Shown piece by piece: positions 2,621 to 5,132 of a stretch of DNA of 64,000 nucleotides. The position numbers and the translations under genes were made by a program. The notes beneath the pieces are model-generated. The model was given only the letters and a program-made list of their open reading frames with translations. It had not been told where the DNA came from and made no database searches. The stretch lies in the sequence record ON287376.1; one strand, written 5' to 3'. Positions within the stretch are counted from its first letter, which is position 1. Each line of letters opens with the position of its first letter.

Positions 2621-2766
2621 TTTAGATCTTTTTTTACGCAACAAGTTTAAGTATGTAGAAGCTGCATCAAGTAATCATTTAGTTCAATTAACTCCAGGGT
2701 CGATTGTCGGTAACTAAGTGAGATTCAGCTACAAGCGGGGATGGATCCCCACTAAGTATTGGAGAG

Positions 2767-2863
2767 CTTTAAGGGTACGATCTCAATCGTCCGGGTTGTG
2801 GAACAACTTCCGCACACTAGTGCGTTGGTTTAGGGTTCGACTCCCTACCGGAATGCCTTAAAG
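2767..2863 (+). ncRNA. tRNA-like cloverleaf embedded in a longer stem
   Basis: T arm TAGGG-TTCGACT-CCCTA (2831-2847); closing TCCGG/CCGGA; arms GTTGT-GGA-ACAAC and CGCAC-ACTA-GTGCG; outer stem CTTTAAGG/CCTTAAAG. Confidence 0.6.
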
Positions 2864-2934
2864 GTAGCGCATGATAAATGCGAGCAACTAACACGAGGCG
2901 ACATTACGCGCCTACTCCAATCAAAACGAATTAC

Positions 2935-3017
2935 GGGGGAGTTCCAGAGTGGTCAAATGGAGCAGACTGTAAATCTGTTGTCTTCGGACTTCGGTGGTTC
3001 GAATCCGCCCTCCCCCA
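2935..3017 (+). tRNA. trnY: tRNA-Tyr(GTA), canonical class II, CCA not encoded
   Basis: GGGGGAG/CTCCCCC acceptor, GCAGA-CTGTAAA-TCTGT anticodon arm, GTC-TTCG-GAC variable arm, GGTGG-TTCGAAT-CCGCC T arm, A73. Confidence 0.95.
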
Positions 3018-3025
3018 AGAATAAT

Positions 3026-3121
3026 GCGACGATTAGCTCAGTTGGATAGAGCGCGGTTATTGCCCCCTGGGCAAACATCGGAAACCGAGGCCCCGTGTTC
3101 AAATCACGGATCTGTCGCCCA
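3026..3121 (+). tRNA. Atypical tRNA: Arg-like D arm, 24-nt anticodon loop, G-1:C73, bulged acceptor, CCA encoded
   Basis: GCGAC-GAT/ATC-T-GTCGC + CCA; D arm GCTC-AGTTGGATA-GAGC; CGGTT/AACCG stem; T arm CCGTG-TTCAAAT-CACGG. Confidence 0.75.
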
Positions 3122-3127
3122 AACAAT

Positions 3128-3206
3128 GAACCGAGTAGCTCAACTGAATAGAGCACCGTCCTGCTAAGACGGAGGTTAGAGGTTTGAATCCTTTCTCTGG
3201 TTCCCA
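3128..3206 (+). tRNA. Atypical tRNA with GCT (Ser) anticodon on a class I body; G-1:C73, bulged acceptor, CCA encoded
   Basis: GAACC-GAG/CTC-T-GGTTC + CCA; CCGTC-CTGCTAA-GACGG anticodon arm; 5-nt variable loop; T arm AGAGG-TTTGAAT-CCTTT. Confidence 0.8.
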
Positions 3207-3212
3207 AACAAC

Positions 3213-3376
3213 GACACTGATCTCAAGAAGATCGGCAGCCTTACCCAACCGTGTCGCGGCGATCGCCAGCAATCGGTATTTAGTGCACGGTACGTAGACA
3301 AGCCTTTGAGCGAAGTTCCGCGTCCCGAGCCGCCGGCAGCCCATAAGCCTCAGTGAAATTCTGAGGGGTGTCACCA
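3213..3376 (+). ncRNA. 164-nt RNA with tRNA-like acceptor/T domain (6+6 bp) ending ACCA
   Basis: GACACT/GGTGTC + ACCA; CCTCAG-TGAAATT-CTGAGG; GATC-TCAAGAA-GATC 5' hairpin; internal ACCGTG/CACGGT helix. Confidence 0.6.
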
Positions 3377-3381
3377 AAGAT

Positions 3382-3445
3382 GTCCTCATTGCAGAGGGAG
3401 GTTGATTGTAGTCAGCCTGTTGTGAAACTAATCTGCAGTGGGGAC
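3382..3445 (+). ncRNA. Structured RNA element (14-bp closing helix with inner hairpin)
   Basis: GTCCTCATTGCAGA/TCTGCAGTGGGGAC, 14 bp including G-U pairs; inner GGTTGAT-TGTA-GTCAGCC. Confidence 0.5.
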
Positions 3446-3466
3446 GCCTTCCCTTTCTAAAGTTTT

Positions 3467-3552
3467 ATCGAGATAGTCTACTTAAACCTAGTGAGGAATT
3501 CGACGGCGGATACGTCCGTAAGACTGCGTAGGTTCGATCCCTACTCTCGATC
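3467..3552 (+). ncRNA. tRNA-like RNA with 23-nt D loop and 4-nt anticodon loop
   Basis: Perfect ATCGAGA/TCTCGAT acceptor; T8 A9; GTC/GAC D stem; GCGGA-TACG-TCCGT; GTAGG-TTCGATC-CCTAC T arm. Confidence 0.7.
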
Positions 3553-3568
3553 CGATTTAAAAGAACAA

Positions 3569-3696
3569 TGACGCCTGCACGTAAAAAGCAAACTGCGCCA
3601 GCTGGGCGCGGTGGGGGCTAAGTGCCAGCAACTGTTGTGGCGAGATCGCGGCAACAGCACCGGAAAGCCAGGTGCGATTCCTGGGGGCGTCACCCA
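3569..3696 (+). ncRNA. 128-nt tRNA-like RNA (8-bp acceptor + 5-bp T stem), ends C-CCA
   Basis: TGACGCCT/GGGCGTCA + CCCA; CCAGG-TGCGATT-CCTGG; internal hairpins ACTGCGCC/GGCGCGGT and CTGTTG...CAACAG. Confidence 0.65.
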
Positions 3697-3698
3697 AT

Positions 3699-3776
3699 TA
3701 GGTACGTAAGTCTCAAGTGGCCGCATTCATCTGCCCGCTGCCTAAAGACTTTGTGGAATGGATTCCGCGTACCTAA
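3699..3776 (+). ncRNA. tRNA-sized structured RNA with acceptor/T-like stack
   Basis: TAGGTAC/GTACCTA 7 bp abutting GTGGA-ATGGAT-TCCGC; AAGTCT/AGACTT inner helix. Confidence 0.45.
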
Positions 3777-3811
3777 AAACCAGTAAGTTAAACTAATAGG
3801 ACGATTCTACG

Positions 3812-4321
3812 ATGACTATCCTTAATCGCGATATGATCATGCAAGAACTCTTAAACTCAATAGATCCTGATGCAGGCCCATGTCTTGGGCTTAGCAGGGA
3901 AAAAGAGTTAGCCGAAATTTATACGCTAGGATTCAAGGCACCTCGCCAAACGGGGTCTACGTATTGGCTTATCGAAAAACTCATTGAGGATCGTAACTCA
4001 ATTGTAATTTTGATTAATAGCGACTTTAAAGAACACTTCCTAGCGGATGTTGAGAAATACCCTAAAATCATTTTCGACAAGTGTCTTAAATATGGACCAT
4101 CTGTTGAACGGGGTATTCTTAATGGCGACAAAGACAATATAATCGATCGTTGCTTCACTGCCAGGGAATTCTTAAACGCTGACCTAGAACGTCACCGCTA
4201 CGCCACATCGGTCTTCTTTGATGGCGCGTCGACGATTGCTAGTAAGATTAATCTTAATGCGTATTACCGAAAGTTGGCCAAAGAAGTAAAAGGTTATCCG
4301 GTTACTTGGCTGATTAACTAA
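3812..4321 (+). CDS. Degenerate P-loop (terminase-ATPase-like) domain protein
   Basis: AGGA RBS; APRQTGST resembles PRQxGKT Walker A with K>S; SVFFDGA resembles a Walker B lacking Glu. Confidence 0.6.
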   Translation: MTILNRDMIMQELLNSIDPDAGPCLGLSREKELAEIYTLGFKAPRQTGSTYWLIEKLIEDRNSIVILINSDFKEHFLADVEKYPKIIFDKCLKYGPSVERGILNGDKDNIIDRCFTAREFLNADLERHRYATSVFFDGASTIASKINLNAYYRKLAKEVKGYPVTWLIN

Positions 4322-4413
4322 AGAACACTTGATGTGCTGGTAAAGGTTTAGTCACCTTTTTTAAGATCGTCCGCTAATGATTGATACTAGCGCATCTTTT
4401 TTATTGAAGAATC

Positions 4414-4638
4414 CCGCCGATCGGGTAGCGTACGTCTGGCGTAGTCATTACTCTAATTGAGTGGGGCTACGAGGGGTTTACCAGTCGATCGGTGGTACCA
4501 AACTCTGAGCAGGTTGCAGCCGGCTGGAGTAAATAGGGGACTGCGAGTCCCCAGGTGCATAAAGGCCCAGAAATGGCGCCCGGCACAAGACGCAGCGCGT
4601 CGGTATCGAGAGGGGCTTCGGCCCCTCTCTTTATTTTC
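4414..4638 (+). ncRNA. Candidate orphan structured RNA ending in an intrinsic terminator
   Basis: CCGCCGATCG/CGATCGGTGG 10-bp helix enclosing the GTAGTC/GGCTAC hairpin; GGGGACT-GCG-AGTCCCC; GACGC-AGC-GCGTC; no RBS-supported ORF. Confidence 0.5.
4608..4637 (+). terminator. Rho-independent terminator
   Basis: GAGAGGGGC-TTCG-GCCCCTCTC followed by TTTATTTT. Confidence 0.85.
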
Positions 4639-4655
4639 TTCAACGGGAAACTGTT

Positions 4656-5132
4656 ATGAAATTCATACTGGCATTGAATCCTAAAGATCCGGCAATTAAA
4701 GGTTACGAATCAGATCTTCTTAAGATGATCCAGATTATGGATAAACGAGAAGCTACTTACTGGAAAGAGTCAGCTAACTTAGATATCCTTAGTCGTGAGA
4801 TGGAGTGTAAAACCTTAGAGGAACGTTGGGTAGACGATACTCAAATACTAATGCTCCTTGTGAGGGGTAATCCTGTAGGTTTCGTTGAGTACACGACCGC
4901 AGTAGTTAACGCTAGTTCTAAGTGGCTTTCTATATGTTATCTGTACGTACAACGAGAGTACAGAGGGTTTGGATATGGATCTGCACTAGTTGATCAAGTA
5001 AGGAACTTTGCCAAGATCCAACAAGTAGATCAATTGTCACTTTCAGTCAAGTCAAGAAATAAACGAGCCATTAAGTTTTACAAGAGATACGGTTTCTCGG
5101 AACAGACTAAGTACTTCTGTATGAAACCTTAA
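4656..5132 (+). CDS. GNAT family acetyltransferase
   Basis: LYVQREYRGFGYGSAL acetyl-CoA motif A; SVKSRNKRAIKFYKRYGF motif B. Confidence 0.9.
   Translation: MKFILALNPKDPAIKGYESDLLKMIQIMDKREATYWKESANLDILSREMECKTLEERWVDDTQILMLLVRGNPVGFVEYTTAVVNASSKWLSICYLYVQREYRGFGYGSALVDQVRNFAKIQQVDQLSLSVKSRNKRAIKFYKRYGFSEQTKYFCMKP

Follow-up and report, generated by a model that had tools for sequence, protein, structure and literature searches.

The tRNA cluster of bacteriophage T4 contains two annotated genes, rnaC and rnaD, which do not encode tRNAs; rnaC has a canonical T arm, rnaD ends in CCA, and the roles of RNA C and RNA D are still unknown (PMC3014915). HDV-like theta ribozymes, which are small structured RNAs, immediately flank phage tRNAs (PMC10879173), and SegB drives preferred inheritance of the T4 tRNA region (PMC2330249). 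Here, we analysed the tRNA-array locus of the Serratia jumbo phage vB_SmaM-Kodama (ON287376.1, 275 kb, genus Moabitevirus). The window, the whole stretch of DNA that was analysed, corresponds to bases 1-64000 of this record, and positions are those of the window unless a locus of another phage is named. Annotated phage tRNA arrays read as series of tRNAs interrupted by unexplained gaps; at the Kodama locus, the gaps hold conserved RNA genes. A dense and co-oriented set of RNA genes is found where this lineage has its tRNA array, and comparisons between phages indicated that several of the RNAs are selected for their structure and for specific non-tRNA sequence. By analogy with T4 RNA C and RNA D, we consider it probable (roughly 0.6) that the array encodes small, stable, non-decoding RNAs of a tRNA operon, which would be matured via an acceptor/T-arm handle and carry conserved payloads.

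The Kodama tRNA locus is densely packed with structured RNAs

The array lies in a 1.19-kb stretch between coding sequences (CDSs) for proteins of 52 amino acids (2462-2620) and 169 amino acids (3812-4321). No CDS is annotated in 2621-3811, and the only features of the record in this stretch are a tRNA-Tyr and a "tRNA-Ser". An initial annotation, made from the letters of the window, had described about 1.1 kb of DNA in which nearly every base belonged to a folded element. Folding analyses agreed with this description: 11 elements, all on the + strand, occupy ~1032 of the 1131 bases (~91%) between 2650 and 3780, and the GC content of the array is 0.50-0.54, compared with 0.40-0.45 in the flanks. 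Elements are separated by 3-20 nucleotides (nt). Every A-rich spacer that had been quoted was located (AGAATAAT at 3018-3025, AACAAT at 3122-3127, AACAAC at 3207-3212, AAGAT at 3377-3381 and AAGAACAA inside 3552-3567). The TATG reported at 2652 is also present (2652-2655); the 10-mer around it is not a repeated motif, its recurrence across the window being no higher than expected by chance.

Four elements end with an encoded CCA, as proposed: E6 (at 3121), E7 (at 3206), E8 (at 3376) and E11 (at 3696). The folded units were real, but their number and boundaries had to be revised, two or three supposed elements being one 164-nt RNA (2758-2921), called U3 here. The acceptor and T arm attributed to most elements were found in E6, E7, E8, E10 and E11, but not in E1, E2 and E9, which are plain hairpins without a T arm.

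No conserved open reading frame (ORF) was found in 2655-3774. Close relatives differ across the array stretch by insertions or deletions (indels) of 1, 8 and 14 nt, plus one of 12 nt, and this stretch is therefore incompatible with coding. As anticipated, tRNA finders missed most of the array. With standard settings, ARAGORN and Rfam detected two tRNAs only, at 2935-3017 (53.6 bits) and 3128-3206 (47.5 bits); relaxed ARAGORN searches reported three to five tRNAs in the stretch, adding 3027-3121 and two weak calls. U3, E8, E10, E11 and E12 gave no match with the canonical tRNA model (RF00005), even at E <= 10. A strict scan looked for a 5-base-pair (bp) T arm with a T-loop-like heptaloop, followed directly by a strand pairing perfectly over 7 bp with an upstream strand (the acceptor). 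It returned three elements in the 1.1-kb array vs four in the other ~127 kb (both strands), and these four matches are unconvincing, non-canonical-looking and attributable to chance.

A scan for sigma-70 promoters and terminators inside the array gave nothing convincing. This result, the common strand, the short spacers and the acceptor/T-arm handles all point indirectly toward a polycistronic precursor, and processing of the array RNAs from such a transcript is plausible.

U3 defines a large and apparently undescribed phage RNA family

U3 (2758-2921) is a single 164-nt RNA with a four-helix core and a tRNA-like domain inserted in one of the helices. The 7-bp closing helix P1 (AUUGGAG/CUCCAAU; 2758-2764/2915-2921) leads through a joining AG to the 8-bp helix P2 (CUUUAAGG/CCUUAAAG; 2767-2774/2856-2863). 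P2 encloses an 81-nt insert (2775-2855) with a small hairpin (2778-2789) and a reduced tRNA-like domain (2790-2852), which has a canonical T arm (2831-2847) and gave a sub-threshold mascRNA-like match (30.1 bits). Downstream of P2, a GUAG precedes the P3 hairpin (2868-2882), which is followed by the conserved 14-nt joining strand J3/4 (AGCAACUAACACGA; 2883-2896), the P4 hairpin (GGCGA..GCGCC; 2897-2912), a UA and the 3' strand of P1. The minimum free energy (MFE) fold of the Kodama sequence on its own recovered all four helices (z = -2.67; 0/200 shuffles).

The family was defined by the arrangement P1 - AG - P2 - (insert) - GKAG - P3 - AGNAANUAACACGA - P4 (GGCGN..NCGCC) - UA - P1', located in a tRNA array, and the Kodama copy shows every one of these features. 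More than 100 members were found in phage contigs, almost always within tRNA arrays, the sources being IMG/VR, metagenomes and three bacterial genomes. BLAST searches detected the whole unit (~74% identity) inside the canonical tRNA arrays of the Erwinia jumbo phages Machinavirus and Seoulvirus, and its 3' half also in ~85-kb FelixO1-like Ounavirinae and other phages. The embedded domain of relatives of the Erwinia jumbo phage and Ounavirinae types is sometimes annotated as "tRNA-Undet" or "tRNA-OTHER".

A 15-nt J3/4 pattern retrieved 93 IMG/VR loci, which were reduced to 36 unique true members; in 34 of these, scripted detection placed perfect P1 and P2 helices at a constant distance from the conserved junctions. 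An alignment of 28 core sequences had 97.5% of its cells paired, a percentage inflated by the selection of the P1 and P2 strands with a script requiring complementarity; the count of pair types is unaffected by this selection, and 14 of the 22 pairs displayed double (compensatory) changes. The covariation score of the core was 0.547, compared with 0.119 for shuffles (0/500 reached the score) and 0.03-0.07 for slid partners, these shuffle controls taking no account of phylogeny. Because the P1 and P2 strands had been selected for complementarity, an independent check matters: RNAalifold, run on five full-length phage copies, arrived at the same helical scheme, including the tRNA-like insert, and 19 of its 46 pairs were compensated. 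Pattern-based retrieval also biases the apparent conservation of J3/4, and the truly invariant part, judged from diverged paralogues, is ACGAGGCG..CGCCUAC.

A covariance model of the core identified one copy in the Kodama window and 85 copies in 80 metagenomic loci, with up to three paralogues per array; it had no match in the T4, JD18, N1M2 and SXP01 loci. Two or three diverged paralogues share a tRNA array in loci L217, L213, L239, L251, L254 and L266. For 55 of 84 copies, ARAGORN detected a tRNA within 500 nt, often just 8-20 nt away, and the nearest tRNA was on the same strand in every case. Among 185,579 bacterial species with one genome each, only three true copies were found, all beside tRNAs. 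The P2 insert is variable in length (5-148 nt). Among 31 members, 17 have a T arm at the end of the insert, 8-9 nt before the 3' strand of P2, and thus an embedded tRNA-like domain; inserts elsewhere are unrelated. The insert is absent from locus L084 (5921-6002), where U3 is an autonomous 82-nt RNA with four helices and a cloverleaf topology. At locus L079 (~4620-4800), a relative of U3 carries a permuted tRNA-like module in which the T arm precedes the D arm, an order similar to that of YrlA. A GOLLD RNA (206 bits; locus L031, 1814-2183) shares a tRNA array with another family member.

Searches of Rfam 15 with the U3 core gave no family match, either at gathering thresholds or at permissive cut-offs (E <= 10 for Kodama, E <= 0.5 for six short-insert loci). 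At gathering or permissive thresholds, the window, 15 U3 loci and the six short-variant loci returned only tRNAs, one GOLLD RNA and sub-threshold mascRNA and YrlA matches. A full-text search of the literature, the coverage of which is incomplete, found nothing relevant to the conserved sequence. No protein gene is consistently adjacent to U3; the best candidate is a putative RtcB-like ORF, assigned from a motif (3/35 loci: L039, L083 and L084). Eight nt of J3/4 are presumably complementary to a conserved segment of 16S rRNA, a match roughly estimated to be at chance level and set aside. Collectively, these comparisons indicate that U3 is a large phage RNA family, apparently undescribed as far as Rfam 15 and the searched literature go, and that its core is a candidate new RNA class.

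The location of U3, 8-20 nt from a tRNA in many arrays, raised the possibility of a cis-acting device: U3 would be a self-cleaving ribozyme or a sensor of a ligand or protein, E9 would be a processing site or terminator, and both would tune the maturation or dosage of the neighbouring tRNAs instead of acting in trans. The compact four-helix junction and the near-invariant 14-nt joining strand resemble those of ribozymes or aptamers, several paralogues can occur in one array, E9 is a very stable duplex, and the theta ribozymes beside phage tRNAs provide a precedent (PMC10879173). However, no ribozyme or riboswitch family of Rfam 15 matched, and the topology of U3 does not fit HDV-like ribozymes because the would-be P1 strand pairs with upstream instead of downstream sequence. 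An HDV-like fold of the 3' module was considered and discarded as topologically impossible. In phiEa104, a promoter-like TTGACA-17-TAAATT ends 12 nt before P1 of U3 and a second promoter follows the RNA, an organisation that suits a stand-alone gene. On balance, we find a cis-acting role improbable.

E10 and E8 are conserved in unrelated phages

E10 (3467-3551) is an 85-nt tRNA-like RNA with a 7-bp acceptor and a canonical T arm (GUAGG-UUCGAUC-CCUAC). It has no D stem, anticodon loop or encoded CCA. Its central arm (GUCU/AGAC) carries a conserved strand of ~26-27 nt and the hairpin CGGA-UACG-UCCG. Homologs with 82-86% identity were found in the Klebsiella jumbo phage N1M2, the Shewanella phage SXP01 and dozens of T4-like phages (Jiaodavirus, Slopekvirus and Gelderlandvirus, infecting Klebsiella, Enterobacter and Salmonella). 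Without exception, these homologs are unannotated and located inside tRNA clusters. Compensatory changes occur in all four helices: A-U/G-C in the acceptor; C-G/U-A and U-A/G-C in the central arm; G-C/A-U in the inner hairpin; G-C/U-A and U-A/C-G/A-U in the T stem. The pairs were counted in a hand-registered alignment, as the MAFFT version was out of structural register at the 5' end. The internal strand is nearly invariant among homologs, which indicates that the selected part of E10 is its non-tRNA part. A segment of this strand, GGAAUUCGACGG, resembles the D-loop analogue of tmRNA; this candidate was rejected on account of its different topology, the lack of a G3-U70 pair and the absence of any tmRNA match. 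A short motif common to E10 and T4 rnaC or rnaD (AGUNAGGAAUU), seen by eye only, was also dropped.

In the Klebsiella phage JD18 (locus L013, 1677-2601), a 925-nt gap left blank in RefSeq contains tRNA-Arg, tRNA-Leu and tRNA-Thr genes according to ARAGORN, an E10 homolog, a 127-nt tRNA-like RNA (1688-1814) and a segment of ~230 nt ending in a terminator-like hairpin.

E8 (3213-3376) is a 164-nt tRNA-like RNA. Its acceptor (GACAC/GUGUC) is followed by ACCA, and its T arm is CUCAG-UGAAAUU-CUGAG. The interior comprises a hairpin at the position of the D arm, a GCAGCC motif that is repeated, and a central domain that is large and variable. Relatives, again inside tRNA arrays, were identified in Moabite (a diverged allele; locus L006, 1390-1510), in the Erwinia Seoulvirus pEa_SNUABM_29 (locus L009, 3191-3307) and in a 240-kb IMG/VR contig (locus L148), the last being the one true relative recovered by a T-arm pattern search that otherwise gave mostly chance matches. 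The unusual T loop UGAAAUU is invariant in these relatives, the payload varies from 114 to 215 nt, and compensatory changes affect the T stem (A-U to C-G) as well as the acceptor (GACACUG to GGUACCU). Similar long RNAs with an acceptor and a T arm, missed by tRNA finders, are present in the arrays of Machinavirus, N1M2 and JD18. A 150-nt tRNA of a Machinavirus (locus L010, 2885-3034) has a long insert with a second T-arm-like hairpin in its anticodon region, in effect a 'tRNA within a tRNA'.

The true tRNAs are the labile members of the array

Comparison of eight Moabiteviruses located the instability of the array in its true tRNAs. The Kodama tRNA-Tyr (anticodon GUA; 2935-3017), detected by both ARAGORN and Rfam, is canonical, with a long variable arm and no encoded CCA. 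A second allele with many compensatory changes is found in ParM25, 2050HW, BUCT660 and Moabite, and the Haymo gene has an 8-nt deletion of the anticodon loop. The Haymo feature 'tRNA-Asn(gtt)' (locus L002, 1135-1214) corresponds to tRNA-Tyr minus this loop, a gene that is dead or remodelled and was probably mis-called. In Totoro (locus L008, 1813-2418), a gene encoding an HNH nuclease lies inside the array and replaces the 3' two-thirds of tRNA-Tyr. Just downstream of the HNH gene, the Totoro E7 is a chimeric element that has the E6 sequence as its 5' strand and a broken acceptor stem. The arrangement suggests homing, with segB of the T4 tRNA cluster as a parallel.

E7 (3128-3206), annotated as 'tRNA-Ser', carries the anticodon GCU (3163-3165). 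The initial annotation had recognised tRNA-Tyr as the only canonical tRNA; E7 passes tRNA thresholds in both ARAGORN and Rfam, yet it is aberrant. Its variable region is 5 nt long, as opposed to the long arm of the Machinavirus tRNA-Ser(GCU) genes (84-88 nt, class II), and nhmmer identified phage tRNA-Arg(UCU) genes as its closest relatives. A20, C35 and U36 form the identity set of arginyl-tRNA synthetase. As read from their sequences, E6 and E7 share a common end in which the 5' G (G3128 in E7) pairs with the discriminator C, next to a 7-bp acceptor with a bulged U in the 3' strand, and a CCA. A G-1:C73 pair is a hallmark of tRNA-His. As a class-I tRNA with a bulged 8-bp acceptor stem, E7 is no normal tRNA-Ser. 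The bulge model is supported by the Moabite sequence, in which the bulged base is an A instead of a U and every pair is retained. The T stem of E7 covaries among relatives, and the tertiary D-loop/T-loop partners 19 and 56 change in concert, being A/U in Kodama but G/C in Totoro. Position 33 (window 3162), normally an invariant U in tRNAs, is U, C or A among otherwise near-identical phages.

The three states of position 33, together with the loss, replacement and HNH invasion of tRNA-Tyr, are signs of a conflict at this locus, and phage tRNAs counter tRNA-cleaving defences. The array RNAs could therefore be anti-defence decoys, soaking up effectors that attack tRNAs (anticodon nucleases, enzymes acting on the acceptor or CCA) or competing for synthetases or EF-Tu; the acceptor, T arm and CCA end were retained while the remainder was rebuilt. 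However, E8, E10, E11, E12 and U3 present no 7-nt anticodon loop and would thus be poor mimics of anticodon-nuclease substrates. The most conserved nucleotides belong to non-tRNA payloads (the internal segment of E10, J3/4-P4 of U3), which argues against simple mimicry. Furthermore, the same families extend to phages whose hosts differ widely, soil and freshwater contigs among them, and this distribution favours a universal partner over a sporadic defence system. We consider decoys an unlikely explanation for the array, if one of some weight; a role of its RNAs as acceptor-end sponges is conceivable.

U3 is 100% identical in six of the seven other Moabiteviruses. Between Totoro and Kodama, identity is 100% for U3, 98.4% for E8-E12 and 89.8% for E1, compared with 42% for the protein encoded downstream. 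Conservation above the surroundings fits strong constraint, cassette exchange by homing, or both. The downstream 169-amino-acid gene is confined to the genus plus a few distant matches and is therefore useless as an anchor for related loci. In Moabite (locus L006, ~1690-1990) and Yaphecito, an extra insert of ~300 nt separates E10 from E11, and E8 is a diverged, longer allele. The small Moabite ORFs CPT_Moabite_075 and 078-080 overlap RNA regions and are probably spurious.

The cassette-like swapping of alleles and the HNH nuclease inside the Totoro array could also indicate a feature acting at the DNA level, either a hot spot of recombination or homing or else a signal for replication or packaging, the inverted repeats of which would mimic RNA folds; the T4 tRNA region and SegB offer a parallel (PMC2330249). 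This seems hardly credible: G-U pairs and wobble to Watson-Crick substitutions are specific to the + strand, T loops and the acceptor/T-arm geometry are features of RNA, and the orientation is always that of the neighbouring tRNAs.

Neutral decay of tRNA pseudogenes had been named in the initial annotation as the outcome that would overturn its proposal. Such relics would be left by the shrinkage of an array like that of sister genera, where the equivalent locus, also with U3, carries a full set of 11-14 canonical tRNAs. The restriction of E6 to Kodama, the broken acceptor of the Totoro E7, the loss of the T arm from the Moabite U3 insert and the frequent indels agree with decay. Yet U3, E8 and E10 are conserved with compensatory changes across unrelated phage families, which refutes the explanation for these three RNAs, and their interiors are conserved novel sequence, not degraded tRNA. 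In Totoro, U3 and E8-E12 persisted next to the strongly diverged gene, and the decaying parts are the true tRNAs. As an account of the array, neutral decay is quite improbable. The proposal of selected, structured and mostly tRNA-like RNA genes was upheld, with helix covariation at homologous loci in three cross-phage families and an array that outlives the divergence of its flank.

Other elements of the array, several of them found only in Moabitevirus

E1 (2655-2732) is a 78-nt extended hairpin without a T arm (MFE z = -2.27). The Totoro copy has about ten substitutions, and a hand reading of the two sequences indicated that changes in the helix mostly keep pairing (A-U to G-C, wobble to Watson-Crick, a loop turned into UUCG); no homolog was found outside Moabitevirus. 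E2 (2737-2750) is a short GC hairpin (GGGGA-UGGA-UCCCC), identical in all relatives. E6 (3026-3121), detected by relaxed ARAGORN only, is a tRNA-like RNA with canonical D and T arms and a CCA end (z = -0.43). Its acceptor is 8 bp long with a bulged U, and its 24-nt 'anticodon loop' holds a hairpin of its own. E6 was absent from all relatives of Kodama and from the phage collection.

E9 (3382-3446) is a long hairpin of 65 nt (MFE z = -4.64; 0/200 shuffles). Its ~22 bp are interrupted by an internal loop, and a pyrimidine-rich tract comes after the hairpin. All three helix substitutions in Moabite are wobble to Watson-Crick changes, and the G-U pairs identify the + strand as the one that folds.

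E11 (3569-3696) is a 128-nt expanded cloverleaf (z = -2.86) with an 8-bp acceptor followed by C and CCA, a long arm I, a hairpin arm II and the T arm CCAGG-UGCGAUU-CCUGG. In ParM25, 2050HW and BUCT660, an unrelated sequence takes the place of arm II and nonetheless folds into a hairpin at this position. E12 (3700-3774) is a 75-nt RNA with three arms (z = -2.18): a 7-bp closing stem (AGGUACG/CGUACCU), a central arm and the hairpin GUGGAA-UGGA-UUCCGC at the T-arm position, without CCA. One G-C to A-U compensation was found in Totoro, and a 14-nt tandem duplication is tolerated in the central loop of BUCT660. Substitutions in E1, E11 and E12 are few and mostly compatible with structure. No E11 or E12 homolog was found beyond Moabitevirus, pattern scans of IMG/VR returning ordinary tRNAs that share the T arm, or random matches.

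Outside the array, the 334-nt gap between CDSs at 4322-4655 has a GC peak of 0.485, compared with ~0.40 in flanking sequence, and might hold another structured RNA.

A tRNA-like handle may serve the maturation of payload RNAs

We propose that the array is transcribed with the tRNAs as one or a few precursors. The handle would be the coaxial acceptor/T-arm stack of E6, E7, E8, E10 and E11, weaker in E12 and in the U3 insert. It would recruit host RNase P, 3' trimming exonucleases and the CCA enzyme, leading to excision and tRNA-like stabilisation, with T4 RNA C and RNA D serving as the model for both steps. Cleavage of an RNase III type, or termination, at the E9 duplex may divide the array. 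Function would reside in the payloads. In E10 the payload would be the strand of ~26-27 nt and in U3 the J3/4-P4 core, while E8 would contribute its UGAAAUU loop and its GCAGCC motifs; the most likely partner of these payloads is a conserved factor, from the host or the phage, that takes part in translation or tRNA metabolism. The phage thus appears to use natural 'tRNA scaffolds' to express other RNAs.

Several observations weigh against this proposal, besides the inflated pairing percentage of the U3 alignment. U3 has no CCA, and its closing helix would hold both halves of the RNA together after an RNase P cut. A 12-nt deletion in Moabite and Yaphecito destroys the T arm of the U3 insert; as some members are also insert-free, the tRNA-like handle is dispensable for U3. 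Single-sequence folding energies are unremarkable for E6, E7, E8 and E10 (z = -0.4 to -1.1). Since E1, E6, E11 and E12 have no homologs outside the genus, selection on these elements is deduced from a handful of substitutions. Finally, recent recombination or homing, as opposed to purifying selection, could account for part of the near-identity that the array shows among phages.

A broader and more tentative possibility is that the 80-nt U3 core is a new, widespread class of phage RNA, either a small ribozyme or a high-affinity binder of a universal factor of translation or tRNA metabolism, one helix of which docks tRNA-like modules. Together with E8 and E10, it would suggest that phages routinely use the acceptor/T-arm minihelix as a scaffold for effector RNAs, some of them countering tRNA-directed immunity. 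If true, this would provide by analogy a function for T4 RNAs C and D, which have been orphans for 50 years.

The U3 family counts more than 100 members, drawn from phages of soil, freshwater and enterobacteria, and displays textbook covariation, with no Rfam entry and no match in the literature by sequence search; E10 is unannotated in dozens of sequenced T4-like Klebsiella and Salmonella phages. Because relatives are found in phages that can readily be worked with, namely FelixO1-like phages of Erwinia and Salmonella and T4-like phages of Klebsiella, the role of non-tRNA RNAs in phage tRNA operons can now be tested directly. Our analysis also has consequences for annotation, because spurious small ORFs and mis-called 'tRNA-Ser' and 'tRNA-Asn' genes are currently deposited over array RNAs.

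Comparison with known RNA systems

The Kodama array was compared with the families that it resembles; every sequence or model test of membership in the T4 rnaC/rnaD, Y RNA, tmRNA, mascRNA, GOLLD/ROOL and HDV-like families failed. E8 and E11 resemble tmRNA in keeping an acceptor, a T arm and CCA with the anticodon arm replaced by a large domain. They differ from it in that the array RNAs are 130-165 nt long instead of ~360 and have neither a G3-U70 pair nor a tag reading frame; ARAGORN and Rfam found no tmRNA in the window, where the acceptors read GACAC.., UGACGCC.. and AUCGAGA... GOLLD and ROOL RNAs are likewise phage-borne and located beside or around tRNA genes. In contrast to the 80-nt U3 core, they are 400-800-nt multimer-forming RNAs, and Rfam detected neither in the window. 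The helices of U3 are nested differently from those of HDV-like theta ribozymes, and no HDV-family match was found in Rfam, including with the short variants.

The U3 insert domain (2790-2852) shares a reduced cloverleaf with mascRNA and MALAT1-type RNAs (RF01684): the acceptor is short, the D stem is lacking, a T arm is present and the anticodon arm is non-standard. Its score (30.1 bits) is lower than the gathering threshold (42.5) and mascRNA is a eukaryotic family, so that the resemblance reflects a convergent shape and not homology. The likeness to YrlA (RF02553), which represents bacterial and phage Y RNA-like RNAs, concerns modularity, with a closing stem made of the 5' and 3' ends, a tRNA-like module and the permuted order at L079; the putative RtcB-like ligase genes near U3 (3/35 loci) are a further parallel. 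No Ro/TROVE gene was found, no search aimed at one having been made. Unlike this similarity in design, P3, J3/4 and P4 of the U3 core have no counterpart in YrlA; RF02553 scores in the region were 18.7 and 15.4 bits against a threshold of 69, both matches spanning tRNA junctions and not U3, and the short U3 variants gave no match.

The T4 locus (L016) had no match with the E10 hidden Markov model, with the U3 model, or in BLAST and nhmmer searches with E1, E2, E6-E9, E11 and E12. The likeness to T4 lies in context and design. The rnaC and rnaD products are non-tRNA RNAs of ~120-140 nt, encoded in a row with the tRNA genes of the phage, in the same orientation and with a few nt between them; the Kodama RNAs are similarly found in a tRNA cluster, co-oriented, non-decoding and provided with tRNA-like termini. 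A homing endonuclease gene is present in the RNA cluster of both T4 (segB) and Totoro (HNH). Kodama differs from T4 in that non-tRNA RNAs exceed tRNAs (~8 to 1-3) and in that its families spread far beyond T4-like phages. By analogy, the array RNAs are therefore similar to T4 RNA C and RNA D in context and design, and in part to Y RNAs with a tRNA module. Non-decoding stable RNAs in phage tRNA operons are a known kind; what is new is this array as a variant of that kind.

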